Assembly (NCBI GenBank): GCA_002269645.1
Contig: NIVC01000504.1
Coordinates: forward strand, 62,001 to 126,000
Length of the DNA stretch: 64,000 bases
Direction of reading: 5' to 3'
Source of the DNA: Macrostomum lignano
Taxonomy: Eukaryota
Below the pieces are notes generated by a model that worked only from the letters and a program-made list of their open reading frames with translations, searched no databases and was not told the origin of the DNA. A program made the translations under genes and the position numbers. This document shows, piece by piece, positions 16,129 to 59,500 of this stretch (within the stretch, counting starts at the first letter, position 1; each line of letters begins with the position of its first letter).

Positions 16129-16340
16129 AAAATTAGTTGCTTTTGCCCTCAAGCATAAGGAAAGTACAGAAAATTAGTTGCTTTTGCCCTCAAGCATAAG
16201 GAAAGTACAGAAAATTAGTTGCTTTTGCCCTCAAGCATAAGGAAAGTACATTGAGAAACACTGCTTTTTCCATCAAGCATAAGGAAACGGACAGAAAAAT
16301 TAGTTGCTTTTATCCCTCAAGCATAAGGAAAGTACATTGA
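16129..16340. repeat. 41-bp tandem repeat (~5 copies, later ones variant) in the Gypsy pol-ORF3 spacer
   Basis: aaaattagttgcttttgccctcaagcataaggaaagtacag at 16129, 16170 and 16211, then degenerate copies. Confidence 0.85.
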
Positions 16341-16854
16341 GCGGGGAAAATTGAAAATCTGCTTTCAGCACCGAACAGGTGCAGAGAAAGCTTACAGCAA
16401 AATTTAATTCAGAACGCGTTTGCAAACTTGACTACTCATAGTAATGCTTTAATTTAGCTATTAGGCGCAATAATAAATTGCTGGTAAATACCTTTTAGAG
16501 CTCCATCTCCATGCCGATGTCAGGCAAGTCCGGGTCGCCTTCGGCGAGCACCTCCAGGTGGCGCAAGCTGGGCTCGAACAGCTGACTGCCTCGCAGGTCA
16601 GGCTGAACTGTGGCCGGCTGCTCTGGCGCGGGCTGATCGGCTGGGTCGACTTTGCTGTCTTCGCTCGACTCATAGGGCAGCATTGGCTGCTCTGTCTGGC
16701 GCGGCGGCTCCTGTGGTCGATCTGCCATCATCTGCGGCACCTTGATGATGTTGTTACAATGAACTAGCATTTCAGCTGGGCGTCCTCGGTGGTCTGCCAA
16801 CCCGCTCGCTGCCCGAAGTTTGAGAAGGTGAGATTCAGCAGCGACGCGGACAGC

Positions 16855-18308: not shown

Positions 18309-20884
18309 GCTGTCCGTGTCGTCCCCAGCTAGTAGTCGGCGGCTCCCCGACGGGCAACATGTCGTGCTATTGAAACTGGTAGGTGACCTCTGCGAGTCAT
18401 CGTAATGGCTGGCTGATGGCCTCGGCTTCGTCGCCGGCGGGTGCAGCTCTGTCAGCGGCTTGCTGTCGGCTGTCGGTGTTGCTGGCGGCGTAGCCTCGCC
18501 GTTGGACTCCTTCGGCTTAGTCGGCAGTTTCCATCGCTTACGGCGGGTCGACGGCTTCTTGCTCGGTGGAGGACTAGGGTGGCTGCTGTCGTGGACCTTC
18601 GGCGCCACTGCGCCAGTTATCGCGGCTGGCTGCTTACTTTGGTCCCCTTCAGCTGCCTCTCGCTGAGCCTCCTCCAAGCATTCGGCGTCGTCCTCCGGCC
18701 GTCTTGAGAGACCGTCGGCGTTTTGATGCTGACTCGATTTGCGATGCTGGATCTCGAACTCAAATTCACTTAGCCGCTGTAGCCATCGTCCGAAGATGCC
18801 TATTTGTTGAGTTCGCCAGAGAATCCAGGTCAACGCTGCATGGTCGGTTCGACAAATGAACTTCTTGGCCAGCAGGTAGAAGCGGAAATGTCGCATGCCA
18901 TCTACGACTGCCAAGAGTTCTTGCTTAGTAATTGGATATCGGGCTTCAGCCGGTTTAAGTCGCCGGGAGAAATAGCCAATTGGGCGCTCGATCCCGTCAG
19001 CTTGGCGTTGGCTCAGGCAGGCTCCGATTCTGGTCGCAGAAGCATCCGTGTCCAGGATAAACATTACTTCCGGATCCTCGCTGAACTGCGGATACGCGAG
19101 CACTGATGTCAAAGTCATGGCTGCTTTGAGCAGATCGAACGCATCTTGCTAGGCTTTTCCCCATAGACAATTGAAATTTCTAATCTTCTTTTCCTTGATT
19201 AAGTCGTGGAGTGGAGCTGCAAGTTCTGCATAGCCAGGTACAAATTTTGCATAGTAAGCGCACGTGCAGACAAAACTTTTAAGTTAATGAGCTGTTCTTG
19301 GTCTTGGCCAGGTCTGAATAGCCTCGATCTTCGCCAGATCGGTCTTGATGCCGTCCTTAGTAACTACATGTCCCAGATAGTTTAGACTTGCCCGAAATAA
19401 ATGGCACTTCCTGCCTTTGAACTTCAAGTTGGCCTCTTGAATTCGCTTAAATACTTCCTCCATATGCTGTAGATAGTCATTAAATTTCTTAGAATAGATG
19501 ATTATGTCATCCAGGTAGGCTATTGCACCTTTGTAGGCGATCCCGTTGAGCACAGCGTTTATGAGGCACATAAAGCTGGCTGGCGCCAAACTTAATCCCA
19601 TAGGCATCACATTGTAGGCGAATTGTCCGCGGTGCAGCGTGGCGAAGGCCGTCAGATCTTGATCCTCTGGATGCAGTGGAATCTGATAGTAGCCGCTATT
19701 GAGGTCGAACGTGCTGAATAGCTAGCTTCCTTCAAGGCTGGCGAATGCTTCTTGAATATTCGGTATCGGGTACGGAAAGTACTCGCACTTTTGGTTCAGA
19801 CTCCTGAAGTCTTGTACAATTCTCAGGCTGCCGTCCTTCTTCGGGATGATCACCAGCGGGGTGTTGTAGCTGGAGAAGCTCGGTCGAATCACGCCTTTGG
19901 CAAGCAGATCGTCAAGCAGCTGGTCCACCTTGGGCAGCAGATGCGGCGGAATCCTTCAGGTCGGCAGATGTACAGGATCCTTGTCCTTCAACACGATGTT
20001 GTGGGTGACCAGGTGAGTTCGGCCGAGATCGTGTGGCCCCTGCGAGAAGATGGTCTTATACTTCTTCAATAGCTCGATGACTTGAGCGCGCTGGTCATTG
20101 GACAAGTCCTCGCCAATGTCGATCTCTTTGATCCAAGCGTCAGGATCTTCGTCTTGAACTTGATTAACTGAAGCTTCTGGCTTCGGCAGTGGAAAGAATT
20201 GTAACTCGGGCAGTCTGATTGGTCTAGCAATCCCAACTAGGGCATTCGCTCGCACTTTGATGGAAGTAGTGCCTCGATTGATCATCTCAATGGCGCCTTC
20301 TCCATTGGCCATAGATATTAAGGCAGGCGCGGCGTCCAGTTGCTGCACATCTTCTTCACGCCGAGCCGGTTTTAGCGGCTCGATCACAGCAGGTGTGCCC
20401 TGGTTTTCTTCTCGTCCTTTTGCTAGTTTAATCTTGATTCGGGCTGATGATAACGGCGGCACGGTTGTGCTCTCAGCTGTGTAGATTCTGCACGTAGTAG
20501 CTTCGGTTCGCGTATAGCGCAGTGGTGCAGCAGTGCCATCCTTGAAAAACAGCATCCCGGCGGCGAGTTCCAGTGATGTACTGTACTTCTCCAGGAACTC
20601 AAAGCCCAGGATGTTGTCATGAGATCCCTTCGCTAGGAGGAACTTGACTGTAGGCTTGAAACTTCCAATTTTAACTTTGATTGATAGTTGGCCTGCCATT
20701 TGAATAGGCTCTCCATTGTAGGTCACAATGCGTTGCAGGCAGGGCTCGATTTGGCCACGCAGGGTCGGGTCATCGGTACATAGTCGGTGCCAGGTGCTGA
20801 ATCCTAGGACTTCGCACTTGGAGCCGGTGTCAAGCAGAAAAGCAAAATAACGGCCCTGAATCTCACCAGTTAGAAACGGATCCC
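18309..20884 (-). pseudogene. Gypsy pol: protease, reverse transcriptase and RNase H, with stops and frameshifts
   Basis: FLLDTGS at ~20830. RT motifs PSFSSYNTPLVIIPKKDGSLRIVQDFRSLN, DLNSGYYQI, MPMGL and YLDDIIIYS. RNase H motifs FILDTDAS and TDHAAL. In-frame TAG at ~19722; split across several ORFs. Confidence 0.92.
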
Positions 20885-20885
20885 T

Positions 20886-22373
20886 TCAGGGTCGCTTGGG
20901 TGCAGAGTTATGTACAGGTGCAGCGGAGGCAGTCTCAGCAGTGGCCTGCTGAGCGACTAAAGTCCTCAGCAGGGACCTTAGTGCTGGCTCGGCTGTTGGA
21001 TGGCGCTGCCCCCGTTGGCGCATCCAGCCGTCCCATTTCCCGAGCTGCCGTTGCGCTGGGGCGTGGTGCTGGCCAACCACTGGTGCGGGCACTCATCGGC
21101 GCGGTGCTTGCGATTGCACCTGTAACACATAGCGCTCTGTCGCCATAGCTGATAGGGCGGCGGGCGTGAACCCAACTGTTGCTGCCGCTGCGGCTGCTGC
21201 TGCTGCTGCTGTCAACATTGACCTCCTGCTGGCGGCATCCTTGGCGGCGGGTTGCTGCCATCTCGTGGTTGCTGAAGTCGATGGAACTGCTCGTGCTGCA
21301 CAATCCGTGTGCCGGGTGTCTTGAATTGGGCGCTCTCATCGGTGCTGCGGCGAGGAGTCGAGGGCACCAAACATCTGTTGCGTTGGCCCCAAGAGTCCTG
21401 CGGCTGGTGGCGAGCAGAGTCCCAATGCTCCTGGGTGTCATTATTGCGCGATCCCAGCGAGTGGAACTCTCGCAGCTCATTGCTCAAAGCTTCTAGTAGA
21501 CGTCGCAGGTGTCTCAGTTTGCTGTTCCATCACTTCACGCAACCAATTCTCCTCGGGCCGAGATGACTTGTTGTGTTGCACTCCAGTTGGTGACTGACCA
21601 TCATCATCCTCGAGAACCCGGACATGTCTTGCTGCTGGCGGCGGTGCTACCCTCTGAGCCAGACTAGCTGCTGTCTCCAGGCGTAGCACAGCCCTTCTTG
21701 CTGCGGTCAGATTCTGCGGTTGCGCCAGGATTAGCTGTTCTCTGGCTGACTGGGCAATTCGCACTCCCACGGTGAACTGGTCCACTAGCTCGGCCTGCTT
21801 CTGAACCGGGGTGAAGTGTGGGAATGCTCTATTGGCCAGAGCAATTAATCGATCGCCGTAGTCATCCACACTCTCATTCTTGCCTTGCTGGCAGCACCGG
21901 AATTGCTCACGGTACTCCAGCGTATCGGCCACGTGCGTGAAGCGCTCGGACAATCTCTGCTTGAATTTGCCAAATGTCAGATTGTCTGGCAGTTCCATCC
22001 TAATGACTGCGGGATAGGTTGTGGCGATGTCCAAATTCACTAGGACTTCCGCCTTCTTACATCTGTCGTCCACGATCCCGTTGAGTTCACAACGCTCCTC
22101 AAGAGCCTAGATCCAGACGTCAAAGTCCAGGTTCGGGGTGTACCGCAGAATTTTGACCGGTTTCGGCGCCAGAGCTCGGTCAGGCTGTTGGGGCGGCTGA
22201 TACACGTGGTGATGGTGCTGCGGCTGTCCCAAGTTGGCCTGATCCAGTCACCATCTCACCTCTTCGGTCACTGCTCAAATCATCTCGTCGTAGGTTGGCC
22301 TAGTAGTTGAGTTGTTGGGGCCCGCGGCGTCGGCTGTCAAATCTGTGGCCGTTGAGTTAGTTGTCGAAGCCAT
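20886..22373 (-). pseudogene. Gypsy gag with nonsense mutations
   Basis: ATG at 22373 (MASTTNST...). In-frame TGA/TGA/TAG in the first 100 codons, then a retrotransposon gag-like core (QEFRCCQQGKNESVDDY) and a CYRCNRKHRADEC knuckle. Confidence 0.85.
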
Positions 22374-28068: not shown

Positions 28069-28410
28069 CTAAGAAGAAGAATAGGCTTTCAGCTGAAACT
28101 TCACAATAGCTTTTGTTCATCAAAGCTAGATTGCTTTGCCTTTGTTGGCTTTAAAATTTTGGGTCATTTTCAGGTTTCGGGTAAATATCAAATTTCAATT
28201 TCGAGTTTTGGGACATTAGGTGGTAGCAAAAATCACTTTCGGTCATCTCTAATTTTATTAAAGTAAACCTAAGACTTTCTATATTAGTGAGTTAGGTGTA
28301 GGTGTAAAATTTGTTGTCATTTTGTCATTTTGTCAATTTTGTATTTTAAAACTGTATACAAATGTAATTAATAAAAATTGACAAATTATATTTGTAAATA
28401 ACTTTTTCAG

Positions 28411-34661
<6,251 letters not shown>

Positions 34662-35108
34662 CCTGCCTCTGTTGACCTGTTAGTCTACATGTATCCCCTA
34701 CGATCACATCTGTATTAATAGCATCATCAAATTAATGTTACTATAAATTAAATATATACTAAGAAATTCTTTCTATTCTTTTTTTTCATATGTACATCAA
34801 AATTGGATTCAGCCTGGATATTTTTTCATATCAAACAATATTTTATTTTTTTACAAAACAATCATGCAGAAAGGCCATAAAAAGTAACACCGAGATTACA
34901 ATACTTTTAACAAAAGATTAAACAGGAAGGCGGTGTAATTGCCCTTCTGAATAATGTTAAAAAAGTATTAAGCAAGATGATTTTAATAAACAAGCAAATT
35001 ATGATGATACAAATGATACAAATTATACCGAAAAAAAAACAGAAAGGCGATGTCATTGCCTCTCTGACATTTTCCCGAACCGAAACTTGGCCGAACAGCT
35101 GGCCAGCA

Positions 35109-38100
35109 TCAGATGAAGCTGGCGTCCAGATCAGCCACCGGTCTGTTGCGCCGGTCCCACAAGCTTGGTGGAGCGACAATCGCCGACGAACTGCCGCTGG
35201 TCCAAATTGGATCCATTGGCAGTTGAATAATGATTGTCGACTGGATATCTTTCCATTCGACTCCATTACTGTTGCCATGGAGACAGATAGTGACAAAAAA
35301 GCGTTCGACGTTTGTAAATTCCTGATGGTTGTCGGTGCATTTTGTCAGTTTTAGGCGAAGTCGGTGCTAAAATAGATTTAAAGATAAAGACAACTTTATT
35401 TTAGTTTATTTGTCTTTTATTTCCTTCACTTAATTTTGGGTTAGAAATTAAAATAAAAAATTACCCAATTGAGTTCGAAATTGACCAGAGATACTTTATC
35501 CGAGTTGGTTAGCGTGACGCCAGTGAGATTGTCGTAACCTAAAACGTTACAAGTTTTTACGAGCATATTCTTTTTAATAACCAATGAGTGAATGACATTG
35601 ACATACTGCATATTTGCAAAAAAGTTTTGGCAACGGGGCTAGTCCATGCCCAGCCAGACGCTCTGTCAACTGTAGAAAGGCTTCAAGTCAGGACTGTAGG
35701 GTGTGTATCATGTGTAAACTAGGCCGAAGGCAGGCTGAAGCTAGTCTACGAAGTGGTTAAAGCCAAGCAAGATATTTTACCAATTTTTTAACTATTTGAT
35801 GGGGCTTGGTCACCGACAATCTGTGTGCTCCAGTATGAATTTTCACAGAGTTGTGATGGCATAAAAATAGGTAAAAAACGCACATTTTCAGAACTGAACT
35901 TTTCTTTCTTCAGTCATAGGTTGGAAGTGAGGCTTGATTATTAGGCAGATATATGGAGCTGTAATTTTCCCAATACAGTTAATGCCTCTCTACCTCTTTA
36001 TGGCAAAAGTCTGCTGTCATAGAAATGTTATTAATAACTTTATTAGTACTGAGGTACGGAATGCTATAAAAATCGCACGTGTTCTCAATGCCTGCCGAAT
36101 TGGTACGAGCGTACTAGCATGTGCTCCGGCTTATGCTTAAAATAGAATTGGCGTCATAAATTGGTTCCATGTTGGCTAAGGCAGAGGGAAAGGGATTTAG
36201 TGCAGGCTATTTTACTATACTCAACAGCTCAAAACGAACACTCACCAGTAATTATAGGCCGACTAAAATGTACCAGTACTTCAACGATATCCCCATTTTT
36301 AAGTGTAATATCGTATGGTTGAACATCCGATACAGTTGGAGGCTTCGGCAAGTCTACAATCGGGCACAATTCGATTCATATTGTCAATAGTAGCTCAAAA
36401 CTTCAAGTTAAAAAACACCTTATGTGGCAGGTACTCTGATAATCATGCACATCATTAATAGCTGTATTCACGTTGCCTTTCTTTTACGCACAAATTTTGT
36501 TCTTGATAAAAAAATTTGACATCTATAAGCGTAAAATATTATTTTCTTAGCCATAAATACTCACGTGCCATTAATACTAGTAAGTATGTTACCTAGCGGA
36601 AATTTTGTTTGAATGTGACCGCCATTTTTGCTGAAAATCATTTAAATATAAGCGAAATAATTGACAGGAGAGTATACTCCTTGCCTAGCACTTTCTGTTA
36701 GTCTAGCAAAGGTTTTAATCGAACAGTTGTTCTAAAAATAGATCTGACTCTGTGTCATTTCTTTGAAGGCCTTCTCTCTCCCCCAAAGGTTTTGTTTAGC
36801 TATAAGCGTACAGCCTTTCCCCTTCTCCCCAAGAGAACGTACAGTCTCTTCCCTAGTAATTATCCTAAACCCCTCCCCCTTCCCTTTATCAGTTGGACAG
36901 GCGTGTTGCCTTCCCCCCTCTTTCCCAGATCTCTGGTTAACCTGGCGATTTGCCAACTCCCCATCCAGGCGCACTGTTTGCTCAGGCCTTAGCCTATCTA
37001 CAGACCCTTCCCTTAATATCATTTACTTTGTCTCCCTATCCCATTAGGCATTCCCTAACCATTTAGCTCCCAACTATTAGGCAACCATTAGGCGCTCTGC
37101 CCTTATCTAATTCCCTATTAAGCGCATCCCCCACCATGTCAGCATTCCCTACTAGCTATTAAGATTCCCCTATAGTGCGCCCCGTTTCTCAGGCAACTCC
37201 GATCCATCGCGTAGCCCTCCCTTGGATTAGTTTAAGTTAATATAGACAGTGTCTTGCCGCTCGGACACTTCCACGCTCCGGGAGTTACAATAAGCATACT
37301 TCTTTCAGTAATAGAATTTGCGTATTTTCCCCAAATCCCCAAGAAACTTCCGAAATTCCCCAGTAACCTCCGACCCCACAACAGAATTGGTGACAAACAG
37401 TGAGATTAAACTGGCTACCGGACATTTGCCCTCCGGAATTTGCCCTCCCGACATTTGCCCTCCGGCATTTGCCCTCCGGACATTTGCCCTCCGGCATTTC
37501 CCCTCCGGACATTTGCCCTCGAGGACATTTGCCCTCGGGGACATTTGCCCTCCGGACATTTGCCCTCCGGACGTTTGCCCTCAAGACATTTCCCCTCTGG
37601 AAATGAAATTTCTCCACAATCATGAAACAAAAAAATTTCCCTTCAGTGTGTGTCCAAACAAGTAAGTAATAATAAATAAATGATTACACCTGCCCAATGG
37701 GCAGATGTGCAACCGACAGCTCAGCCGCAGCTATTGCGCGGCGCATCTGAAGGCTGCGTACGGCTGTTCAGTCCAAGGACTGGGGGGTCGCCACACACAC
37801 CCTCAATTACCCCAGCTAATGCTGGTACCCATTTTACAGCTGGGTAAACTGAAGCAACGCAGAGTTAAGTGTCTTGCTCAAGGACACAAATTGTTGCAGA
37901 GGGATCGGGAATCGAACCCCCGACCTTCAAGTCGTGAGTCCGACGCCCTAACCACTAGGCTACAACCCCTACCAACCCCTACACAAATGTACAAGAATTA
38001 CGAGAGAAAAGTCTAAAGTCTTAAGCTTTTGAGACACTTTTAAGTTTTTCTTAACGGTATTATTGTTTTATTTATTAATATAACGGTTTTCATCAACTTT

Positions 38101-41100
38101 TTAACAGCAAATGTCCCCGAGGGGAAATGTCCGGAGGGCAAATGTCCGGAGGGGAAATGTCCCGGAGGGCAAACGCCGCCGAGGGGAAGTGCCGGAGGGC
38201 AAGTGCCGGAGGGCAAATGTCCGGAAGCGGATTAAACTATAGATAAACACCCCTGTAACACTTATAGCTACGATTTACTTTAAACACTTACAGACCAGGT
38301 CTTCTGATGACAACTCAGCCCAATGCCACTTGTCAGTATTGCCATTGCTGTGTAGCTGGTAACGACACAGCAGTTTCAGTTGTAGGGAGTATGGATTTGA
38401 ACTTGGCTTTGGCTTGATTGAACTTTGCAGTCCTGTATTTGCGGATAGAAAAATAGTAAGGCATGATTGTTGAGTAGTGAAGACCAATTGTAAGTACAAA
38501 TACTTTTGGAAAATACGTTAACAAATACAATCAATGATAATATGCTTGATATAGCTACTCGTAGCTCTTACAAGCTATATTACTGCCCTACAAAAAGTAA
38601 ACTTTGAACAGTTAACAGTTACGCATAAAATAACATCCCCCCTCAGATTTGCTTCTTTGGCATACAGAATGGCTGAGGATCGCCGAGGCCTAGAAGCAAT
38701 GGATAAAGGAATAGAAAGGATTGCTCGTCTAAAACAGAGTCTATGGTCAAGGCTTCCTAAAAACTGGGATATCCCCCCCCCATGAATTTTACTGGCTGCT
38801 CTAATTTAATAATAGTCCCAGTTCTTACTGGCTGAAGCTTGTACGCGGGAGAAATTCCAAAGTCACGATTAACGCACATACTATGCTGTAGTATATTAAA
38901 CACAGACAACCTTTTGTTTTAAATGCTAATTTCTTTCCCTTAAGCCGTCGTGGCCCAGAGGAAGAAAACAGTTATAGATGTCCGTATAAAGAATTCTATT
39001 TCTTCGTCCATTCAACAAATAGTTTTGTTTTTGTTCTGTGTAATTCCTTCATCCATGCTAGAAGCCCAGTCCGAAGCCATTCTTTACGCCATAGACAGCA
39101 AATCGGGGGGGGGGGTGTGTGTTATTATATTTTTGAACCTAAGTGTGGCTCAGCCAGGCGCTGTTCTGCCTTCTGCACTAGCTGATTTCACGGCCCGGCC
39201 GTGAAATATTTCTTGGCCCCGCCATTATATAAAAAGCGTTATACATACCATAGACTTTAATTAAGACGAGAACCACGGGCGTGGTGTGAGTTGTGTTACA
39301 TGAGGGTGAGATCTAAGAAAAGTTGACCAACTGGTTTTGGGTGTGAAAACTTTAACATATTGATGAGTGTATGATTGTGCTGTTTTGCTTGTCTTTGCCT
39401 TGATATCTTACAGCCAGAGCAGGAATGACAAGCATGGCCCAGTGTAGGCCTGATTATATGAATAGATGTAGAGACCAGGCAAAGGAAGAGGCAGTGAAAC
39501 AGAAAATGCAGACTGCTGTCATGCCACTTACAGAAACTTGACATTAAGAAATGAATTGAACAGTAAACTGTTTGCTGCCAACATCTGCTTTTGTGCAGTG
39601 CAATTCTAAAGATGTTAACTGACAAATCGTCGAGTGTAAGGTGGTTGTAGCTTAGTGGTCAGAGCATCGGACTCGTGACTTGAAAGTCGAGGGTTCGAAT
39701 CCCGAACCCACTCGGAACAATTTGTGCCCTTGAGCAAGACACTTAACTCTGCATTGCTTCGGTTCATCCCCAAGATGTAAATGGGTTCCAGCATTAGCTG
39801 GGGTAATTGAGGGTGTTTGTGGCGACCCCCAGTCTTTGACTGAACAGCCGTACGCAGACGCAGCCTTCAGATGCGCGGAGCAATAGCTGCGGCTATAAGC
39901 TGTCGGTAGCACATCTGGCCCAAATGCAAATGCAGAGCTTGCAAAAGCATCATCACTCGTCGTGAAATCTTTATCACTAGAGGGTTGACGCCATGTGACA
40001 GCGAGAGTCAGTAGGGGGTTAGCTGTTTCTGATAGTCTATTTAAGTTTTTATGCCAATTGATGTTTAAGATAAGTAGCAATCTGAAAATTAGAAGACAAA
40101 GAAGGCAATAAAATCAATGAAGAACAAGTTATACAGACTTAAGAGTTGGAGACAGATTCATGTGAAAGATTTTTTAATGGAATTCTGAAAAATTGTGCCC
40201 CAATAGCAATAGGCAGATGTGCAACCGACAGCTCAGCTGCAGCCATTGCGCAGGCGCATCTGAAGGCTGCGTACGGCTGTTCAGTCCAAGGATGGGGCCG
40301 GGGGGTCGCCACACACAGCCTCAATTACCCCAGCTAATGCTGGCACCCATTTTACAGCTGGGAGAACTGAAGCAATGTGGAGCTGTGTCTTGCTCAAGGA
40401 CACAATTATTCAAAGTGGGTCAGGAATCAAAGAGATGTAACCTAGTCACTGGCAGAGAAAGTTAATATTTCTATCATTTTACTTTAGTATGGATGTATTT
40501 TGTTCTTTTTTTAAGGTCTATAGCAATAGTTTTTGTTTTGTGAAAATTTTAAGCTTATAAAATATAAGTATTACTGGTGCTTCAGCTTCAAAAAGCTATA
40601 TGCTGGTCAGGAAGAATTAAGTGGGTCCTATTATTAATAAAAGTTTTAAATGGCATATGATACAAAATAAACTTACCAGGATAGCCAAGCTGGGTTATAA
40701 ACTCTTGATATTTCAAGTGGCTTGTCTCATCTCGTTCTCCAATAGTCACAAAAAAGATTTCATTAATTTCATTACTAAAATATTAACAAAAAAATATTTA
40801 AACTTGAATTGAAAAAAATCTAACAGCATAGTTTAAATAGTCCAAAAATTATCTTACCATTTCATATCACTTGGAGTATAGTCAAAGACAATGATGCCAA
40901 CATGATTGTGGCATTGCTTACTATCAAGATAGCATTCAGAGATTCCAGAATTAGTTTTATCAAACTGACAAATAATTAGAAAGCATTCAACTTTTTTAAC
41001 AGTTCCAGTAAATCTAATACAGATATGTATTTTCAGTTTTTCAGATGGGTCTTGTGAATTGTAGATATTCTTGGATGTCTTGATTGTGCCCTAAAATAAA

Positions 41101-41254
41101 AGTTAAAGCAAATAAATAATAAAACAAGTCTTAGAAATATTTGTCAATGAAAAACAAATGGTTGAAACTAATGGACTTACAAAAATAGAAGGGCTTTGAT
41201 TAGCTCTTTGTATTTCTTGGAGCATTTCCATTTTAGCAGACACTAGCTGTTTAC
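35109..41254 (-). CDS. Second divergent Rel-homology gene (paralog, tail-to-tail with the first); start and one internal exon unresolved
   Basis: In-phase GT-AG exons 41254-41181, 41090-40858, 40774-40677, 38432-38292 and 36353-36246, then last exon 35366-35109. The last exon aligns with gene 1: HRLRLKLTK/NLLKLQLTK, ERFFVTICL/EQFMAKLCL, PSLWDRRNRP/PSLHNRAKRP. YLDSKQCHNHVGII..PSDM resembles the RHD LVGKHC..GI..PKDM segment. Several intron positions and phases are shared with gene 1. Confidence 0.65.
37413..38229. mobile_element. Mutator-like non-autonomous element (9-bp TSD) containing a SINE
   Basis: Arms of ~15-bp GGACATTTGCCCTCC repeats in inverted orientation (37413-37600, 38105-38229). 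GATTAAACT lies at 37404-37412 and 38230-38238. Confidence 0.8.
37665..37969 (-). mobile_element. tRNA-derived SINE, copy 1
   Basis: A box TAGCCTAGTGG, B box GGTTCGATTCC, core GTGTCCTTGAGCAAGACACTTAAC and a TTA-rich tail; homologous to three other copies in the window. Confidence 0.85.
39641..39925 (+). mobile_element. tRNA-derived SINE, copy 2
   Basis: Same head (TAGCTTAGTGG, GGTTCGAATCC) and core as copy 1. Confidence 0.85.
40205..40420 (-). mobile_element. SINE copy 3, 5'-truncated (tRNA head lost)
   Basis: gcagatgtgcaaccgacagctcag..tgtcttgctcaaggacacaa matches copy 1. Confidence 0.8.
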
Positions 41255-44200
41255 CTAAAAAACAAAAAGGGTTATTAATATTAGCATAGAAAAATTTATT
41301 TATGATAGAAAGTATAACATACATATTAATAGTGCCACAATTATTCTTGAGAATATTTTACTTAGAAGGTTTTTCTACTCTATGCTTATGCTTGTACAAG
41401 CTATATTTAGAACTAAATATTATATGGACTATAATGGCTCAAGTTACAAGGGTTCTAATTATTTGGGTGAACTGAAAGTTTAGTCTATTGTAAAGAAAAG
41501 ATTGGTTGTCAATTTAGGTTTAGTAGCTCAACTTGTTAGTCTTTGGCAATTGGGTTGGGACCCTAAATGTTTCAATCAAAAGTAATTCTTAAACAATGAA
41601 TGAGGTAGCCAGGAGCTAAGAGAGGCAATGGCAAGAATGGTAAGGAGGCAAGCTTTTTGCTTGGTTTAAGATATAAGGTAGAGATTGAGAAATTGTGCTT
41701 CTATCAAAAGTACCATTAATTTGCCTACCAGAATGGCACTTAGGTCTTAAGAATGGTAGAACATAGCAACAATAAAACTACCATGCTACCAGTGCTTGTT
41801 ACTAACTTACTAAACCATTACTAAGCCAAGACACTGCTTTATATTATTGAGCAATATCCATAGTTCAGATCATGCTAGGTGCATGCCTAAATGAAAATTG
41901 AACAATTACAAATGTACACCTATGCATCAAAAAGTTTTGAGTGCACACTAGGGATTTTGACCCCAGGAAATGCTCCTTGGGGCCCTAGGGAGCTTGTTGG
42001 AGAATACTCTCTAGGGAATTGGACCAGGGACCCTATCCCTAGGGAGAAAAATATGTATTTGTAACCTAATTTTTGTCATTTAAATAAGAAAATGATTCAT
42101 AGAAAGCTGATTGAAACTCTGTCTATGCTCTTTTATTGCAAAATTGCTTATTTTAATGTATTATTTCAAGCATAACACATAAACACAATAGTATCATATA
42201 TATATTTCCAAGAGTTCTATAGCACAAAAAGTTTTTATACCCTTACTTGTAACATTTCTAATGTTTGTACCTATATCAAAAGTGATTGCCTGGCCTACCT
42301 AGCATTGATTATAAGTTTTGCATAATCAATTTTTTATATTGTAACAATTAAACGTTTGAACATTATTTTGATGTCTGCCATTGGCATTATCTATGTTCTA
42401 ATAGTTTTATTGAATACGTTTTTCTAGTTTGTTTGTATGAAATTGAGCTAACTGAATAAAACTATATTTATACCCTAAAAAGCTTAATGATTTAGATTAG
42501 GGAGTCTAGTGAGATTTTAATTTTTTTGAATTTGTCCTCTATTTCAATACCATATGATAGATATTTGTTGTATAAGTAAAATGACACATTACTTTTGAAT
42601 TTTGGTTGAGTAATAAAAAAGTTATAGCACTTTTAGTGTTATATTTTTTGACATTTTTGTAATGCAATTTTCCCATAAGGCACTGTGATCATTTTTGCTC
42701 AAAAGGTCTAATTTTCCGAGTTATAGATAACATAACTTTTGAACAATTCAATGAATTTTCATTCCTAATATGTCATTTTTTAGCATTTTTTATTCTCAAA
42801 AAATAATATGCCATATATAGAATTTTAATCATTAAACCATAATTATGCCACTTTTGTCCTTATATAGATCATCCAGATACAACACCAAGTTGATCTAGCT
42901 GGCTGGCAAGGGGCCCAGCCAAGATAAACTGCAAAAATGCCCATTCAGAAAACTCTAATAGTACTAATTAGATGATGAGGCATTTAGCCCTTAAAATACA
43001 ATTATAGTTACTCCTGCCGTTTACCCAAACATTATATTAACTTTGATTATGCTTCTTTCATACTTAAGTTGCTTTTTTGATCAAAAAGTAATTCATACAG
43101 CCAGTGTATTCACATACATGCATGCTTATATGCACATATAATGTCCAATGCAATGAAACTTAATAGTAAAATTAAAATCAACTTGACTAATAAGATGATG
43201 AGTCACTTTATTATGAAACAATGGTAATAGTTACTCTTGCCATTTACCCAAAAATTAGTGCCATTACTGGAGTTGCAATAAGAGCTAGTAATGAGATCAT
43301 TGTTTTGTCCTGTTTGTATGCCATTTCGGATAATACAACAGAAAAAATAAACACCATCGATGCATATTTGAAAAAATTACATAACATTTTCTATTTTAAA
43401 TAGAAGTTTATGTGTATTTTGGATCCAACTTTGAATAAATATTATGAAAATGCGGGAATACATATGAACAAGCAGTTTTCTACATTGGAAACAATGTGGC
43501 TAGTATAATAGAAAGCATCATTCAAAAGTTCCATCAATGGTTTTTTAAAGGACAACAACTCAAAGCAAAAATTGCTGGCTTACTATAAGGGTATATTTTT
43601 CAGTTTTTTGTATTCAAATATATTTATATTCCATTATGTTTACTACCTTTTGTTACATTCGATCTAGTGTGCCTTGTTTTATAATATAGAATGCCTTCCA
43701 GTACAGATATGAACTAATCAACTATATTTACAAAACTTTTTCTTAGAAAATAGTATTTAAATTTATGCTAAAATGAAATTAGCATAATTTTTGTTTAAAT
43801 GCTGTGAAAGCAAATAACAGTTTACAAAATAAAATTTGTTTTAAATATATTGTGCAAGCAATATAAATAGAGGGCCAATGAGAGGCCAAGAAAAGCAACT
43901 TAAGCTTAGATGATTCTGTCTGTTGCCTTTTTTTTCCACAAGTCTTGTGAGTACAATCAATTTAGTCTTATTAAATTGCTATTTGCAGTGTTTGAAAGAC
44001 TTATTTATTTCCTTTAGAATATCAGAAATCTGCTAGAAGCAAGAATTGCCTGAGGGCAAAGAAATCACCTCATGGTAGAAAAATTGTATAAAGGCTGTAA
44101 CCCTCTGATCTAGGGAATTCCTAGGACTAAGAGAGAATCTCTATATGAGTAAATAGTAGGAACATATAGTGCTAGAAGACTGCTCAGGCCAAGAGTGCAA

Positions 44201-48560: not shown

Positions 48561-49238
48561 TTACAAAGCCAAAGTATCTTTCAGAATCTTCTTAACGGCG
48601 CCGCCCATGGTAGCTTGCACTGGATCGTCGTTACAAGTGGAGTAGTGCACCCGGAAATGATGCGGCGTCAACAGTGGACATTGCATATCCAAGATCTGAT
48701 CGAAATCGCCAGTTCTAGCCAGTTTAGGCTTATAGGTGTCCGGATTCACCATAGTGTCGTTAATATAAAATATCGCATCTGTGACGGCTTGAGTGAGCTT
48801 GTCGCGATGAGCAGATCTGGCAGTTTCGGTGTCAAACGAGGTCAAATTAACGTGAACAATCCAGATCTCCCAGGGCACCGGATCGCTAGCGAAGACGCCC
48901 CATTTGGCTCGCTTCTGCTCGTGAAATTCCAGTGCAACACTGCCGGTGCCTCGCTCGGAACTCTGACCAGACCGGAGCTGCTTGACAAACGCCTGAATTG
49001 GTTGATTGACTTTGTTAACAACTTCATCGCAGGATACTCGAGTGTAAGTGACTTCGATTGATTCGCAGTCCTCGTCAGTCAGTCCAGCGGCTCCCACAGT
49101 CCAGGTGTTGCCGCCCTCTTTAACAGAGATTTTAGCGTAGCAACGGTGTAGCAGAACTGTGTGGAATACCGAACGGACCACTTCTTCAACTTCCATGCCC
49201 TCCAAGTCGAAGGAGAACGTGTGCTTTTGAACGTTCAT
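48561..49238 (-). CDS. ATG101: Autophagy-related protein 101 (HORMA), intronless CDS, 225 aa
   Basis: VFHTVLLHR, TYTRVS, LEFHEQKRAKW..F...VPWEIW and the C-terminal KDTLAL match the ATG101 family. Confidence 0.95.
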   Translation of the reverse strand: MNVQKHTFSFDLEGMEVEEVVRSVFHTVLLHRCYAKISVKEGGNTWTVGAAGLTDEDCESIEVTYTRVSCDEVVNKVNQPIQAFVKQLRSGQSSERGTGSVALEFHEQKRAKWGVFASDPVPWEIWIVHVNLTSFDTETARSAHRDKLTQAVTDAIFYINDTMVNPDTYKPKLARTGDFDQILDMQCPLLTPHHFRVHYSTCNDDPVQATMGGAVKKILKDTLAL

Positions 49239-49364
49239 GTTTTTTCTTCAATAACTGCAATGAGGAGTTTGCATCCATTAACCGATTGGAATATTTGGAG
49301 GAATTTAATTGTTGTTCTATCAAAGGGAACTATGGGAATAATTAATCCCGTGGAAATATTTCCT

Positions 49365-50527: not shown

Positions 50528-53500
50528 TCATTTAAACTTCGGCTTCTTTTTCTTTCCGCCTCCGCCGTGACCGCCGCCGCGTTTTTTGCCGCCAGGCTGC
50601 TGCTGCTGCTGCTGCTGCTTGCTCTTGGCGCTGTTCACCCGATTCAAAGTCGGCAGCGCCGATCCCGGCGCAGCATCGGCCGGTATGGCGAACTCCTCAG
50701 CGCCGCCGTCGGCTAGTAGGAGTTCCTGAAGTCGGCGACGATGCTCGGCTTCGACTTCGGCGGCTCCGGTGTTGAGCTCGTCGGCTAGGCTTGGCTGCTG
50801 CTGACCCGACCCGACCAAGGGCGCTTCGGACGGTCGAAGGTCGGGCAGTAGGCGCTCAGCAACGCCGGCCTCTTGAAGTTCGCGCAGAGTTCGTTCGGCT
50901 TTACGAATTATTCGATTAAATAGGCCGAGGACCTGATTGGTTGAAAGGCAGGTGTTTTCAATGTCATTTAAAAAAGAAATTTCGATACATATCGGCTTTT
51001 TAAAAACTATCGATTTCGATACATATCAGCTTTTTAAGAACTAGGGATTTCGATACATATCGGCTTTTTAAAAACCTAGAGATTTCGATACACGTCGGCT
51101 TTTAAAAAACTAAGGACTTCGATACATATCGGCTCCCAATAAAATAGAGATTTCGATACATATCGGCTCCCAATAAAATAGAGATTTCGATACATATCGG
51201 CTTTTTAAAAACTATCGATTTCGATAGATATCGGCTTTAAAAAAACTAAGGACTTCGATACATATCTGCTCCCAATAAAATAGAGATTTCGATACATATC
51301 GGCTTCTAAAAAATAGGAACTTCGATACATATCGGCTCATAAATAAAAACAGGGATTTGATACAATTCAACTTTTAGTAAACTATAAGTTTCGATACATA
51401 CCGGCTCTTAAAAACCTAAGCTTGGAATGAAATATACTTCATTGTAAAGAAAGTCAATGCAAACTGACTTTTGAACTTTTGAACAATACAAACTAAATAA
51501 ACACTTATCAAACAGTTATTCGATAACTAACTTCTAGCTGAATATTTACCTGAGAAACCGGCATTGACAGGTCGGCGGCCACAGAATCGGCGGATTTCAT
51601 TTGCAGTCCGCAGCCCAGCAGAATGGCCTGCTGAGTGACGGTTAGGCCGCCCATCTCGCCTAAGTCGCCAGCGAAATACAATCGAGCCAGTGGGCAGAGC
51701 AAGTCCGTGATTAGATAATGATCGGCCTGAATAGAATGCGTCGGTTTTCTTATAGTTGGCTAATTGTTAATTTCGATACATATCGGCAACTTGACTTAAG
51801 TTAGTTCGCAAATAAACAGTGCGATCTAAATAGGTACAATTAAAACTAGAATAAAAAACTAGAATACCAAACTTTTAGATACGCATCCAATGCCAGTGCT
51901 TATTTCGATACATATCGGCTTCTCTATCTTGAAATACCGAAAAATATAATTTTCGATACACATCGGCTACCTTATCTTAAGAGACCGAAAAAGAAAGTCT
52001 TCGATACATATCGGCTACTTTATATTAAAAGACCGAAAGTATAGTTTTCCATACATATCGGCTACTTTATCTTAAATATAGTTTTCGATAAATATTGGCT
52101 ACTTTATATTAGACCGAAAATTGGTTCTCCATATATATCGGTTACTTTATCTTAAGTATAGTTTTAGGTACATTTCAGCTACTTTATCTTAAATATGGTT
52201 TTCGATAAATATCGGCTACTGTATCTTAAATATTGTTTTCGATACATATCGACTACTGTATCTTAAATGTGGTTTTCGATACATATCGGCTAATGTATCT
52301 TAAAGATGGTTTTCGATACATATCAGCTACTTTATCTTAAATATTGTTTTCGATACATATCGGCTACTGTATCTTAAATGTGGTTTTCGATACATATCAG
52401 CTACTTTATCTTAAATATTGTTTTCGATACATATCGGCTACTGTATCTTAAAGATGGTTTTCGATACATATCGGCTACTGTATCTTAACAGACTGAAAAT
52501 ATAGTTTTCGATACATATCGGCTTTCTAACCTGAGCAGCGGCATAGTCGCTCAGCCGACGCAGATCGTAGGCGCTGAACGATTGCTCAACTCTGGCCGAA
52601 TTCAACACCGGCGGTCGACGCGCCTGCAGCTGACGGTGCCGAACCAATTCGAGAGCGAAGGCGACTGGCAAGCGTCGAAGCGAATCCCCGGCTAGCAGGT
52701 AAATCAATCGACGCCTAAAATCGACAAAATAGTCCAATAGCCAGTCGGGATGCGGAGCGTCGTTAGTTGCTAGGTGACGCAATAGTACAGCCGAATGCTC
52801 GCCAGTGATGGCGTTGGGAGTCTGGCGCAGGTACAGCGGAGCGAAGCCGGCCCGCTTCCAGAAACGGGTGAGATCGTGCGTCAGGCCGAAGCTGACGGCC
52901 AGGTAGTGCAGCGGCTCCGGACGGCGCTCCGTCAGAGCGGACAGCAGGGGAGGCAGCTGGGATCTAGCGGCGGATTAAGGCCAAAGGAAGTGTCAATGAC
53001 GCTTTTGGGTAAAAGCGAGTGGAAAGTTAACAAACACATGGGATTTTAGATACAGATCGGGATCAGAAAGTTGGGATGGCAAGGGGATTCATTTGGAATT
53101 AAAGCAGGATGGGGATTTGAGCAAGGATTCGGGATCATGTCAGGATGGGGTTGTAGGGAGGGATCTGGGATCAAATCAGGATAGGGATTTAGGGAAAGAT
53201 TTGAATGAAATCAAGATGGGGATTTGGGGCTTGCAGCCTAGTGGTTAGAGCGTCGGACTCACGACTGAAAGGTCGGGGGTTCGATTCCCGGTCCCACTGG
53301 AACAATTTGTGTCCTTGAGCAAGACACTTAACTCTGCATTGTTTAAGTCCACCCAGCTGTAAAATGGGTGCCAGCATTAGCTGGGGTAATTGAGTGTGAG
53401 CTGTCGGTTGTACATCTGCCAATTAAGGCAGGTGTAATCAATTGTTATTAATATTATTATTATTATTACTACGGTAGCAACCAACAGATGGGCTAATATT

Positions 53501-56500
53501 TACCTAGACTTGGGCACCAAAGTCTCCGAGCTCAAGAAGCCGCCTTCATCTTGATCTCCGTCATCGCTTTGGTCGGCAGTAACCGCCCTGGATGCTGACA
53601 CTGCTTCCTCCTTCTCCGCCGCTGACTCCTCAGCCAGGAAGGGAAATTTTCCTTCATAATAATCAGCCAGCAACTGCAGCGCCCTGGATCCGTAGCCCAT
53701 TCGCTGATAATCCGGATGGGTGGCAACTCGAACCACCCGAGCACCGGATAGGGAAGGGAAATCCGCGTCCGAGAACTGCTGCGACACCGTCCAGGGCACC
53801 AGGTCTCCGGCTGGTCGGCGGCCTTGAGCTAGGGCGCGGTGCACCGAGTCGCGATTGATGGCACCTTCTAGGCACACCTGCGATATTGGAGTTTCAGGTT
53901 TGCTGTCTTTATCATTAATCCTTAACCCTCTCAGATTGCGATCTCCATCGTTAATCCTTAATCCTCCCAGATTGAAATCTCTATCAATAATCCTTAATCC
54001 TCTCAGATTGAGATCTCTATCGTTAATCCTTAATCCTCTCAGATTGCGATTTCTATCGTTAATCCTTAATCCTCTCAGTTTGAGATCTCTATCGTTAATC
54101 CTTAATCCTCTCAGATTGCGATTTCTATCGTTAATCCTTAATCCTCTCAGATTGCGATCTCTATTGTTAATCCTTAATCCTCTCAGATTGCGATCTCTAT
54201 TGTTAATCCTTAATCCTCCTAGATTGAAATCTCTATCAATAATCCTTAATCCTCTCAGTTTGAGATCTCTATCGTTAATCCTTAATCCTCTCAGATTGCG
54301 ATCTCTATTGTTAATCCTTAATCCTCTCAGATTGCGATCTCTATTGTTAATCCTTAATCCTCCTAGATTGAAATCTCTATCAATAATCCTGAATCCTCTC
54401 AGTTTGAGATCTCTATCGTTAATCCTTAATCCTCTCAGATTGCGATTTCTATCGTTAATCGTTAATCCTCTAAAATTGAGATCTCTATTGTTAATCCTTA
54501 ATCCTCCCAGATTGAAATCTCTATCAATAATCCTTAATCCTCTCAGATTGAGATCTCTATCGTTAATCCTTAATCCTCTCAGATTGCGATCTCCATAGTT
54601 AATCCTTAATTCTCTCAGATTGAGATCTCTATTGTTAATCTTTATTGATTTCAGATTGAGATCTCTATCATTAATCCCTAATCCACTCAGATTGAGATCT
54701 TTATAGTTAATCCTTAATCCTCTCGAATTGAGATCTCTATCGTTAATGCTTAATCCTCTTGAATAATAAATGATCCATATAATGACTCCCTAATCCCAAA
54801 CATGATTATGCCATATTTTGTATCACCTGCAGCACGCTGAGAATCTCAGGCAGCTGATTCGGTCCTGCCTGTTTATCAAACGGGCCCAATAGCACAAAAA
54901 TGTGATGCGCAGGTGCGTCCGATAGCATCTGCAAATCGTTAGGCGAATTCCGATAGTGACTGGACACGTACAGAGACATCAGCCGGTGTAGAAAGTTCTC
55001 AGTGAACTTGTGATAAGCAAACAAAGTGTCCCGATTGACGTAGTAGAGCTGGCACTGTGATGGGCTGGGGCAGCCGGAGTGCAGCATCGGCACTGATGAG
55101 CAGTCTAAGCAGAGCAGGTCGTTCAGCCAGGACTCGATTGGATCGCCTGGCCCGTAGCTGAGGGAGATAGTCGTTAGGGTATATATTTAATACACTAATA
55201 GTCAAGTATATAAAATCCTAATATGTAATCCCTTATTCTCCTACTAGCGCACTAAGCCTTCCATGGGGGGCATTCAAAATCATAATATTTGACCCCTAGT
55301 ATGGGCTTTATTTCTCTTGTTTCATATTTTGCGATACATATCGGCTTTATTTCTATAGTTCCAAATTTTGACTGGATCTTACTAATCCATTTAGCCTAAC
55401 AATGACTAAATCTTGCTAATCCATCTAGCTTAATCCTGACTGGATCTTGCTAATCCATCCAGCTTAATCATGACTGGATCTTGCTAATCCATCCAGCCTA
55501 ATCCTGACTGAATCTTGCTAATCCATCTAGCCTAATCCCGACTGGATCTTGCTAATCTATCTAGCCTAATCCTGACTGGATCTTGCTAATCCATCTAGCT
55601 TAATCCTGACTGGATCTTGCTAATCCTCCTAGCCTAATCCCGACTGGATCTTGCTAATCTATCTAGTCTAATCCTGACTGAATCTTGCTAATCCATCCAG
55701 CCTAATCATGACTGGATCTTACTAATCCATCCAGCCTAATCCTGACTGAATCTTGCTAATTTATCTAGCCTAATCCTGACTGGATCTTGCTAATCCATCT
55801 AGCCTAATCCTGACTGGATCTTGCTAATCCATCCAACCTAATCCTGACTGAATCTTGCTAATCCATCTAGCCTAATCCTGACTGGATCTTGCTAATCCAT
55901 CTAGCCTAATCCTGACTGGATCTTGCTAATCCATCTAGCCTAATCCTGACTGGATCTTGCTAATCTATCTAGCCTAATCCTGACTGGATCTTGCTAATCC
56001 ATCTAGCCTAATCATGACTGGATCTTGCTAATCCATCTAGCCTAATCCCGACTGGATCTTGCTAATCCATCTAGCCCGACTGGATCTTGCTAATCCATCT
56101 AGCCCGACTGGATCTTGCTAATCCATCTAGCCTAAGGTTCAACCCCAGTATCCAGCTTACCGAATAGACTCATCCAAGGTGATCTCCTTCAGCTGACTAG
56201 ACGCATCCTGCCTGAGCTGCGAGATCAGCTTCAACGATAGCGACCTACCAGTGCCTTCGTAGCCGTTGACAGTAGAGGACAGAAAGCACAGATTCGAGCC
56301 CATCATGGCTCGAACGGTAGCCAAGGGGATGGCGGCTGCTTCATCAATGCACAACAGTTCGGCAGAGTCTGGCTTTGAATTAGCCGAAGGCGCCAAGTAG
56401 GCGATGGTGTACCGATGCTGCTGAACCCGAAGACAGATTTTAACGATACATTTCGCACTGTCGGGATCTGAGCTTTCAACTATGGTAAAGTCAGTGTGCT

Positions 56501-59500
56501 GCTCCCAGCCCATCGCCTGCAGGCCTTTGACAGCGAACTGCATCAGAGTGGCGATATTTTCAGGACCAGGCGAGGTCACGCACACGTTGGCGACACCTTT
56601 GCCGACCGCGGCAGCGATTGCCAAGCCGAGGGCGGCTGATTTGCCTCGACCGCGTGACGCTGTCAGAGCGGCCACTCGCATCTGCTGCTGTTGTTGGGCT
56701 GTTGCTATGGGGAAAGGGGGTGAGCACAGATATTTACAGTACTTGAGCATAAGTGGTATGAGCACAGGGGAATGTGCACTGTGATCTGAACACGGGTGTG
56801 AACATAGGGGTGAAAGAACACGGTTCAGGTTGTGAGAGAACACGGTTCAGGTTGTGAGAGAACACGGTTCAGGTTGTGAGAACACGGTTCAGGTTGTGTG
56901 AGAACACGGTTCAGGTTGAGTGAGAATACGGTTCAGGTTGAGTGAGAACATGGTTCAGGTTGTGAGAGAACACGGTTCAGGTTGTGAGAACACGGTTCAG
57001 GTTGTGTGAGAACATGGTTCAGGTTGTGAGAGAACACGGTTCAGGTTGTGAGAACACGGTTCAGGTTGTGAGAACACGGTTCAGGTTGTGTGAGAACACG
57101 GTTCAGGTTGAGTGAGAATACGGTTCAGGTTGTGAGAGAACACGGTTCAGGTTGTGTGAGAACATGGTTCAGGTTGAGTGAGAATACGGTTCAGGTTGTG
57201 AGAGAACATGGTTCAGGTTGAGTGAGAATACGGTTCAGGTTGTGAGAGAACACGCTTCAGGTTGTGAGAACACGGTTCAGGTTGTGAGAGAACACGGTTC
57301 AGATTGTGAGAGAACATGGTTCAGGTTGTGAGAGAACATGGTTCAGGTTGTGTGAGAACACGGTTCAGGTTGTGAGAGAACATGGTTCAGGTTGTGAGAG
57401 AACACGGTTCAGGTTGTGAGAACACGGTTCAGGTTGTGTGAGCACACGGTTCAGGTTGTGAGAGAACACGGTTCAGGTTGTGTGAGAACACGGTTCAGGT
57501 TGTGAGAGAACATGGTTCAGGTTGTGAGAGAACATGGTTCAGGTTGTGTGAGAACACGGTTCAGGTTGTGAGAGAACATGGTTCAGGTTGTGAGAGAACA
57601 CGGTTCAGGTTGTGTGAGCACACGGTTCAGGTTGTGTGAGCACACGGTTCAGGTTGTGTGAGAACATGGTTCAGGTTGTGAGAGAACATGGTTCAGGTTG
57701 TGAGAGAACATGGTTCAGGTTGTGAGAGAACACGGTTCAGGTTGTGTGAGCACACGGTTCAGGTTGTGAGCACACGGTTCAGGTTGTGTGAGCACACGGT
57801 TCAGGTTGAGTGAGAACATGGTTCAGGTTGTGTGAGCACACGGTTCAGGTTGTGTGAGCACACGGTTCAGGTTGTGAGCACACGGTTCAGGTTGTGTGAG
57901 AACATGGTTCAGGTTGAGTGAGAACACGGTTTAGGTTGTGTGAGAACACGGTTCAGGTTGAGTGAGAACACGGTTCAGGTTGTGAGAGAACACGGTTCAG
58001 GTTGTGAGACAACATGGTTTAGGTTAGCGATCATTCTTACCATTAGACTTATTATAGTCGCTAAGCAGGTCCAGAAAAGCTAGCAGTGTCCTAGCCTGAT
58101 CCAGAGTCCTGCAGAGGCCAACCAGTCTAGCGAATCGTTGATCACTCTCAGGGTCAGTCAGCATTGACTCTTGCAGCTCTTTAAGCTGGCGACCACTGGC
58201 TGACAGGCCATCTAGATTAGCCACTGTGCTAGTGGGTTTAATAGTAGCTAAAGTAGACTCAGATAACGGCAGTACGTTAAATTTGTCGTCCAGTACAAGG
58301 CAGCGACGGCAGTTAGCCAGTGAGAGCAGGAAGCGCTCGTTAAAACGGCCAACCACATCCTGGTGGGATTCTGTGCGATACCTGCGGATAGGAAAGTGGG
58401 ATGTAAGGCTTTAGAAGCGGGAGAGGGTGAGAGGGAAGGGGAGAAGCGGGAGAGGGTGAGAGAGGAAGGGGGAGAAGCGGGAGAGGGTGAGAGAGGAAGG
58501 GGGAGAAGCGGGAGAGGGTGAGACAGGAAGGGGGAGAAGCGGGAGAGGGTGAGAGAGGAAGGGGGAGAAGCGGGAGAGAGTGAGAGGGAATAGTTTGAAG
58601 TGGGAGAGGGTGAGGGAATGAAGAGAAGCGGGAGAGGGTGAGAGATAAAGGGTGAGAAGCGGGAGAGAGTGAGAGGGAATAGAGAGAAGCGGGAGAGGGT
58701 GAGGGTGAGGGAAAGAAGCAAAAGAGAGAAAGAGAGAAGGATAAAACCCAGTGTGGCATCAAGGACGACTTAAATAAGGGCCAGGTCGGTAAACTTTGTT
58801 TCTTAGAAAAACATTTGAAGGCGGGTTTGTCGCTAAAAAGGAAATCAATGCAGAAAATCGAGTAAGACAACAGGTATATCACAGAATTAGATAAGCATTC
58901 AATAAAAGTATTTTATGATTTACTAGTGCGAGCTACTAAGGAGCAGCAAAATCAGAGCTATTTCTAAGAAAAGAAAGTTCCTAAGAAACTGAGACAGTCC
59001 GCATACCTGGCATGCACATCCATAGACATGGTGGCAAGCTGCCTAAGCGAGTCCATGCTATGCAGCAGCAGTACAACCAGACCGCCGCCCTCCACAGTCT
59101 CAATAGTCCTAGCCAGAGTGTTGGGCGTCAGGGCTTCAAAGTCTTGCAGTACGCAGGCGCCGAAGGTGTTGCCGAGGATCTTGTGCGTCTCGCTATAATA
59201 GCACCAGCGAATCTCCGTGGCGCAGACAAACAATTCGAACGGATTGTCTTCGTTAACGTCGAGTTTACCGGATTTCTGCTTTTTTCTGCGAGGAAAATAA
59301 TATAGTACTGATATTGATGCGTTAAGTACTAACAGTAGTATTAAATTGCCTATCATTAAAGTCACGTGATTGAAAAAAAATTAATTATAATTTGAACTAG
59401 AAAAAACAAAATCACGTGATCTAAAGTAATTATGACTTTAACTACTGATAAAAAGGCACGTGATTTAAAACTAATTATAATTTAAACCAAAATTCACCAG

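Follow-up and report, generated by a model that had tools for sequence, protein, structure and literature searches.

What is the gene that lies tail to tail with a divergent Rel-type gene in the flatworm Macrostomum lignano, and did it arise from that neighbour? The two genes occupy part of a 64,000-nucleotide stretch of DNA (the window; contig NIVC01000504.1, here C504, positions 62001-126000), which belongs to an assembly of 764 Mb in 5269 contigs. We refer to the Rel-type gene on the plus strand as gene 1 and to its neighbour on the minus strand as gene 2. Gene 2 is a genuine protein-coding gene, intact, transcribed and restricted to its lineage; it is not demonstrably Rel-like by sequence or by structure. 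We lean slightly towards an origin by ancient inverted duplication of the whole neighbouring Rel gene, or from a common ancestor within an expanded Rel family. Both genes are already in GenBank as hypothetical proteins, and literature and supplement searches on their locus tags found no paper mentioning either of them; all that is new here is the proposal that the neighbour, so far unannotated, is a degenerate duplicate from the Rel family.

Gene 2 is composed as follows.

Gene 2, 41231-35109, minus strand: seven coding exons, all introns GT-AG, coding sequence of 963 nt, 320 aa, open throughout.
Exon 1, 41181-41231, minus strand: MEMLQEIQRANQSPSIF; ATG at 41231-41229, donor GTAAGT, phase 0.
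Exon 2, 40858-41090, minus strand: 77 codons plus 2 nt, ending in phase 2.
Exon 3, 40677-40774, minus strand: NEINEIFFVTIGERDETSHLKYQEFITQLGYP; entered in phase 2 and left in phase 1.
Exon 4, 38292-38432, minus strand: LQSSIKPKPSSNPYSLQLKLLCRYQLHSNGNTDKWHWAELSSEDLV; phase 1 at both ends.
Exon 5, 36246-36353, minus strand: LPKPPTVSDVQPYDITLKNGDIVEVLVHFSRPIIT; phase 1 at both ends, with the start of the predicted C-terminal beta-sandwich.
Exon 6, 35465-35538, minus strand: YDNLTGVTLTNSDKVSLVNFELNW; entered in phase 1 and left in phase 0.
Last exon, 35109-35366, minus strand: 85 codons plus TGA at 35111-35109, with HRLRLKLTK..ERFFVTICL..SNG..PSLWDRRNRP.

The exons were placed with the help of protein P0004 ("hypothetical protein BOX15_Mlig023151g1, partial," 322 aa), which was retrieved by a query built on three exons read in the sequence, the last one and two that lie upstream of it; P0004 was mapped back and the junctions were read in the sequence. 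The resulting chain is 98% identical to P0004, which is encoded by a copy of the locus on contig C2012. The entire locus, introns included, is present on C2012 and also on C31 at 90-99% nucleotide identity, and the tail-to-tail pairing is retained in all three copies. This is consistent with the published redundancy of the Mlig_3_7 assembly, in which 180 Mb lie in non-repetitive blocks at least 95% identical, the cause being extra large chromosomes (PMC5730564). The C31 copy of gene 2 is equally intact and has the same splice sites. The GenBank annotation of Mlig_3_7 is based on genome-guided RNA-seq transcript assemblies (PMC5730564). P0004 is therefore transcript-derived, and joint transcription of the exons, whose absence would have refuted the original prediction (a note made from this DNA alone), is supported for the C2012 copy.

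An acceptor-like AG at 41256/41255, 23 nt upstream of the gene 2 ATG, is a possible (trans-)splice acceptor; it explains the start of the element at 41254 in the original prediction, this being the base after the AG. The ATG of gene 1 stands directly after an acceptor-like CAG (window 28408-28413). Both arrangements would agree with trans-splicing of a spliced leader, a common process in M. lignano (PMC5730564).

A further exon candidate at 35886-35812 on the minus strand (SENVRFLPIFMP), resembling SVRLLFAFVP of gene 1, was rejected on three counts: the phase at its acceptor disagrees with exon 5, it has a weak donor, and the transcript-derived model does not contain it. Introns 3-4 of gene 2 hold three non-coding, tRNA-headed copies resembling short interspersed nuclear elements (~37680-38016, 39640-39920 and 40178-40465), which are 79-90% identical to one another and to the C31 copies; in their heads ARAGORN places a tRNA-Val at 37896-37970 (minus strand) and a tRNA-Thr at 39640-39713 (plus strand). 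Intron 4 also carries a tandem array (37418-37601) in which a 15-nt unit is repeated 12 times.

The neighbouring gene and the region between the two are made up of the following features.

Gene 1, 28411-34661, plus strand: 432 aa; the spliced model is 100% identical to P0001 (BOX15_Mlig027372g2).
Gene 1 exons (n = 8), plus strand: 28411-28488, 28571-28672, 32068-32456, 33172-33311, 33407-33550, 34001-34129, 34215-34321 and 34452-34661.
Spacer between the stop codons, 34662-35108, no strand: 447 bp.
Spacer poly(A) hexamers, plus strand: 34747 (ATTAAA), 34917 (ATTAAA) and 34985 (AATAAA).
Spacer poly(A) hexamers, minus strand: 34987 (ATTAAA) and 34847 (AATAAA).

With gene 1 ending at 34661 and the stop codon of gene 2 ending at 35109, the genes are convergent and spaced just as had been predicted. 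Judged by hexamer position only, the proximal poly(A) signals would give no overlap of the transcripts and the distal signals one of ~150-190 nt; experimental poly(A) sites exist for M. lignano (PMC5730564).

Judged from its sequence, gene 1 is a genuine but divergent member of the Rel family, and here the original prediction was right. Pfam RHD_DNA_bind matches it with E 1.4e-5 and 25.6 bits, just below the 27-bit cut-off, and its hhalign alignment with a set of eight Rel paralogs from M. lignano covers 110 columns at E 2.6e-5 (probability 75%). Its large exon matches Rel exons elsewhere in the genome (E ~0.009, 35% identity), its semi-global alignment with the Rel protein P0009 reaches z 12.8, and it retains YRHRSDGE as a remnant of the recognition loop. 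A phmmer search of the PDB with gene 1 gave no Rel matches. P0001 bears the name "RHD domain-containing protein" in UniRef and "hypothetical protein BOX15_Mlig027372g2" in GenBank. Another UniRef entry, P0002 (307 aa), models gene 1 differently, leaving out the last part of exon 3 and the whole of exon 4; its automatic name, "Integrin_alpha2 domain-containing protein," is unrelated and probably an artefact of annotation.

Between the locus copies the ratio of non-synonymous to synonymous rates (dN/dS) of gene 1 is 1.1-1.3 (3 synonymous and 12-14 non-synonymous changes, with one extra in-frame codon included, an exon boundary having been set 3 nt too far), counts which are too low to call selection, whether relaxed or positive. 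Several non-synonymous differences from C31 and C2012 lie in exon 3 (32068-32456), just after YRHRSDGE (NNFNSQGST vs NDFIRRGSS). Intron 2 of gene 1 holds a 3-kb insertion (28862-31936), mostly CT-rich and of low complexity (CT array 29167-29821), which is absent from C2012 and C31, where 28861 joins 31937 directly. Tandem arrays are found in intron 3 (32500-32974; 15.6 copies of a 30-nt unit) and in intron 5 (33598-33954; a 34/100-nt unit, the copy number varying among the locus copies).

M. lignano has a sizeable expansion of the Rel family. There are at least 24 exon matches over the Pfam RHD_DNA_bind cut-off in the genome, and the Rel exons form same-strand tandem arrays with a spacing of 4-9 kb on C109 (280-388 kb), C475 (52-91 kb) and C1505 (189-215 kb), apparently in three homeologous or duplicated copies. 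Further Rel exons were found on contigs C85/C103/C278 and C20/C694/C1367. The proteins P0009-P0014 from these arrays (e.g. BOX15_Mlig011721g1) match Pfam RHD over its full length with E 1e-14 to 1e-16 (53-59 bits; E 5.9e-16 for P0009), and their profile finds RelB, c-Rel and p65 chains in the PDB across both domains (E 5e-9 to 1e-5).

What ties gene 2 to this family is above all the way in which the gene is built. Its intron phases, 0,2,1,1,1,0, equal the series of gene 1 (0,0,2,1,1,1,0) from exon 3 of the latter on, so that the internal phases are indeed shared, as had been claimed; P0009, a bona fide Rel gene on C109, has phases 2,1,1,1,0 at the corresponding places. If typical metazoan phase frequencies of ~0.48/0.28/0.24 are assumed, the chance of six matches in order is ~1e-3. 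In an unguided MAFFT alignment with Rel paralogs the phase-2 intron stands at column 272 in gene 2 and at column 271 in both gene 1 and P0009, the last phase-0 intron falls at column 475|476 in all three, and the remaining introns lie within 2-46 columns of one another in gappy regions. In position, exon 2 of gene 2 corresponds to exon 3 of gene 1 (32068-32456), the large exon for the Rel N-terminus, and it is 52 codons shorter.

The last exon, which follows a phase-0 intron in both genes, provides the sequence similarity. The motifs L.L.LTK, E.F...CL and PSL..R..RP that had been pointed out are present in both genes, as LKLQLTK, EQFMAKLCL and PSLHNRAKRP in gene 1 and as LRLKLTK, ERFFVTICL and PSLWDRRNRP in gene 2. 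The exon starts at VELKK|HLLVVRTP in P0009, VEVQR|NLLKLQLTK in gene 1 and FELNW|HRLRLKLTK in gene 2. The Rel-family profile pairs KKHLLqVRTP with RQIAIVFKTP of RelB, and MAFFT puts HRLRLKLTK of gene 2 on that same strand; a basic tail follows the last-exon strand (KRPRQ, KRARP; RRNRP in gene 2). The last exons of gene 2 and gene 1 are similar at a pairwise p of 0.0015 (2000 shuffles), the family hidden Markov model (HMM) scores the gene 2 last exon at p 0.009, and the semi-global alignment of the two whole proteins has z 4.6 (p 0.0025). The sole hhalign alignment between them is the collinear last exon.

A considerable body of results weighs against deriving gene 2 from a Rel gene. P0004 has no Pfam match at E <= 10, and phmmer searches with it found nothing relevant in the PDB and, among 1.84 billion representative proteins, no homologue outside M. 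lignano. Pfam also matched neither the single exons of gene 2 nor X-joined three-frame translations of 35000-41400 on the minus strand, and an exon scan of the whole genome with PF00554 did not flag contig C504. The original prediction had called gene 2 Rel-like and had offered to give up the idea if profile alignment with gene 1 was not significant; the hhalign E values are 0.1 for gene 1 and 0.75 for the Rel family, so that formally this part of the prediction fails, and paralogy survives only via the evidence of gene structure. The family HMM, applied to the whole protein, ranks gene 2 69th among 2000 shuffles (p ~0.035), and semi-global alignment with the tandem-array Rel family gives z 1.5. 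Exons 2-6 score no better than shuffles, and the z value between gene 1 and gene 2 falls to 0.9 without the last exons. As had been predicted, overall identity is low (full-length BLASTP, E 0.14), and tblastn of all open reading frames of gene 1 against the gene 2 region gave low-complexity repeat matches only. The argument from intron phases depends on the assumed frequencies. The dN/dS of gene 2 between copies is 0.63 (7 synonymous and 16 non-synonymous changes), which is indistinguishable from neutrality and rests on too few changes to inform.

Four extra phmmer matches of P0004 are long repetitive bacterial-type proteins (CHU_C etc.) and were rejected as compositional.

Structure prediction gave models of low overall confidence, which count against a Rel origin, and weak hints in its favour. 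AlphaFold2 models of gene 2 have a mean predicted local distance difference test score (pLDDT) of ~40 when made without an alignment and of 39.5 with a nine-sequence family alignment, the latter run being not independent of the Rel hypothesis. In it residues ~196-290 are predicted to form a beta-sandwich (pLDDT 53-68). Foldseek gave no match at E <= 1e-3 for either model. The family-alignment model resembles only generic immunoglobulin (Ig)-like sandwiches (E >= 0.011), and the alignment-free model finds two-sandwich proteins (arrestins, transglutaminases), none of them significant; TonEBP/NFAT5, which ranks fourth (E 0.016), and p50-RelB, which ranks 50th, are likewise non-significant. Such matches are compatible with a Rel-like two-domain architecture and are no evidence for it. 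Gene 2 has no Pfam RHD_dimer or TIG match, nor do bona fide M. lignano Rel proteins. The recognition loop (RFRYESE in the paralogs, YRHRSDGE in gene 1), which carries base-contacting residues in Rel proteins and is of the type R-x-x-R-x-R-Y-x-C/S-E-G, has no counterpart in gene 2 when this is aligned by MAFFT with gene 1 and six Rel paralogs.

Paralogy is nonetheless favoured because the shared intron skeleton, the last-exon similarity, the adjacency and long-term constraint speak for it; a frame of 320 codons in seven exons that stays open despite near-saturating divergence from gene 1 argues for such constraint. The observations in the original prediction all hold as far as they can be checked; its interpretation, an ancient inverted duplication kept as a linked pair, is supported in part, by the intron structure, the last exon and the three copies, and lacks profile significance. 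Profile and structure searches that are all negative or non-significant, five of six exon pairs that are indistinguishable from shuffles and the loss of all signal with the last exon would suit an unrelated, lineage-specific orphan gene with a function unrelated to Rel, its neighbourhood, phases and last-exon likeness being coincidental. Such an orphan, however, needs three independent coincidences, in the phases (~1e-3), in two intron positions that agree within one column and in the last exon (p ~0.002), and these fall between immediate neighbours, where the prior for duplication is high; we consider it rather unlikely.

As measurable similarity is limited to the last exon, and the C-terminal sandwich is the only moderately confident part of the predicted structure, one might also propose that just the 3' end (exons 5-7, or the last exon) came from an inverted duplication of the 3' end of gene 1 and became joined to 5' exons of unrelated or de novo origin. 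A chimera of this kind is distinctly unlikely in our view, for agreement in phase and order extends to the 5' introns (0,2,1), the unguided alignment brings the phase-2 intron together with its counterparts in P0009 and gene 1, and the exon sizes are similar (98/141/108 nt vs 140/144/129 and ~100/138/102). Finally, gene 2 might be a functionless transcribed relic, a drifting duplicate of a Rel gene that is open by chance and because the three copies are of recent origin. A dN/dS not different from 1, the lost DNA-recognition loop, the want of relatives elsewhere and the massive recent redundancy of the M. lignano genome (180 Mb at least 95% identical; PMC5730564) would all agree with this. Despite near-saturation, however, the two copies examined as DNA both preserve the 320-codon frame and all 12 splice sites, and an open reading frame is annotated in the third; a long-dead gene would not keep these, and a relic is accordingly very unlikely.

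If gene 2 is indeed a Rel duplicate, it would have kept the exon-intron skeleton of the family, a basic tail in degenerate form (RRNRP vs KRPRQ) and, from the C-terminal Ig-like domain of dimerisation type, the final beta-strands, while its N-terminal half would have diverged beyond recognition and the stretch with the Rel recognition loop would have gone. The product might then be a soluble protein of two beta-sandwich domains which has lost the ability to read DNA by the canonical loop; with no counterpart of that loop, a Rel-derived gene 2 should not read DNA in the canonical manner. Were it still part of a Rel pathway, it could act through contacts of the C-terminal domain, for example as a modulator that pairs with the gene 1 product or with other Rel paralogs. 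A role as a partner or modulator which acts via the C-terminal domain and does not contact DNA would be the most natural suggestion, albeit a tentative and on the whole an unlikely one. That gene 2 specifies a putative "loop-less," Rel-derived subunit which heterodimerises with the gene 1 product or another Rel protein as a modulator or dominant-negative is more doubtful still, and both the heterodimer system and antisense regulation through the 3' untranslated regions are speculation.

The rest of the window contains several unrelated features. A single-exon open reading frame at 48564-49247 (minus strand) encodes a homologue of ATG101, autophagy-related protein 101 (Pfam E 2.5e-31), and a multi-exon gene for a NAT10-type RNA cytidine acetyltransferase, with helicase, GNAT_acetyltr_2 and tRNA_bind_2 domains, occupies ~52440-59380 (minus strand); the open frame of one of its coding exons runs upstream into a tandem repeat of the "LRINDRDLN" type (53500-54789). 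A GC-rich (0.51-0.56), retroelement-derived block extends over ~14400-22100, with an integrase reading frame on the plus strand (16768-18402) and RNase H/reverse transcriptase, aspartyl protease and gag-like frames on the minus strand (18156-22106); as these sets of frames run in opposite directions, the block may consist of two fragments or have been rearranged. At 5616-7535 (plus strand) there is an open frame of 640 aa with no Pfam match, which is possibly a transposase-like or other mobile-element protein.

Should the paralogy be true, the locus shows how far a Rel duplicate can drift while it is still expressed, spliced and open. The recognition loop of gene 2 would be gone, and Pfam, HMMER and profile-profile methods would no longer see the gene; in the expanded and poorly understood Rel repertoire of flatworms its product would count as a candidate for a partner that does not bind DNA. 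The locus also illustrates in practice how the phase and position of introns can reveal ancestry once the sequence signal has gone. Should the paralogy be wrong, gene 2 is one more Macrostomum orphan gene.

A new kind of system is not demonstrated either way, and gene 2 amounts to no more than a degenerate variant within a known family. Like natural antisense pairs with convergent, overlapping 3' untranslated regions, the two genes stand tail to tail across a short spacer (447 bp); unlike in such pairs, the proximal poly(A) signals would here leave the transcripts separate. Flatworms are known to have many and divergent Rel-domain genes. One survey reported no p50/p105-type proteins in Platyhelminthes (PMC11432056), and the planarian Schmidtea mediterranea has seven highly divergent RHD transcription factors on long branches (PMC13563047). 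Like gene 2, the latter are flatworm proteins that are hard to assign to NF-kB classes and have unknown roles (PMC13563047); unlike gene 2, they are still recognisable as RHD proteins. Gene 1 is comparable to gene 2 as its neighbour and in its phase series, the last-exon motifs LxLxLTK, ExFxxxCL and PSLxxRxxRP and the sizes of the internal exons, but it still matches Pfam RHD_DNA_bind and the M. lignano Rel profile. With the tandem Rel family of M. lignano gene 2 shares phases 2,1,1,1,0, a last exon with H-x-L-x-(V/L), the "SNG" turn and a basic C-terminal tail, whereas the members of that family, unlike gene 2, have a full RHD match and an intact RFRYESE loop.

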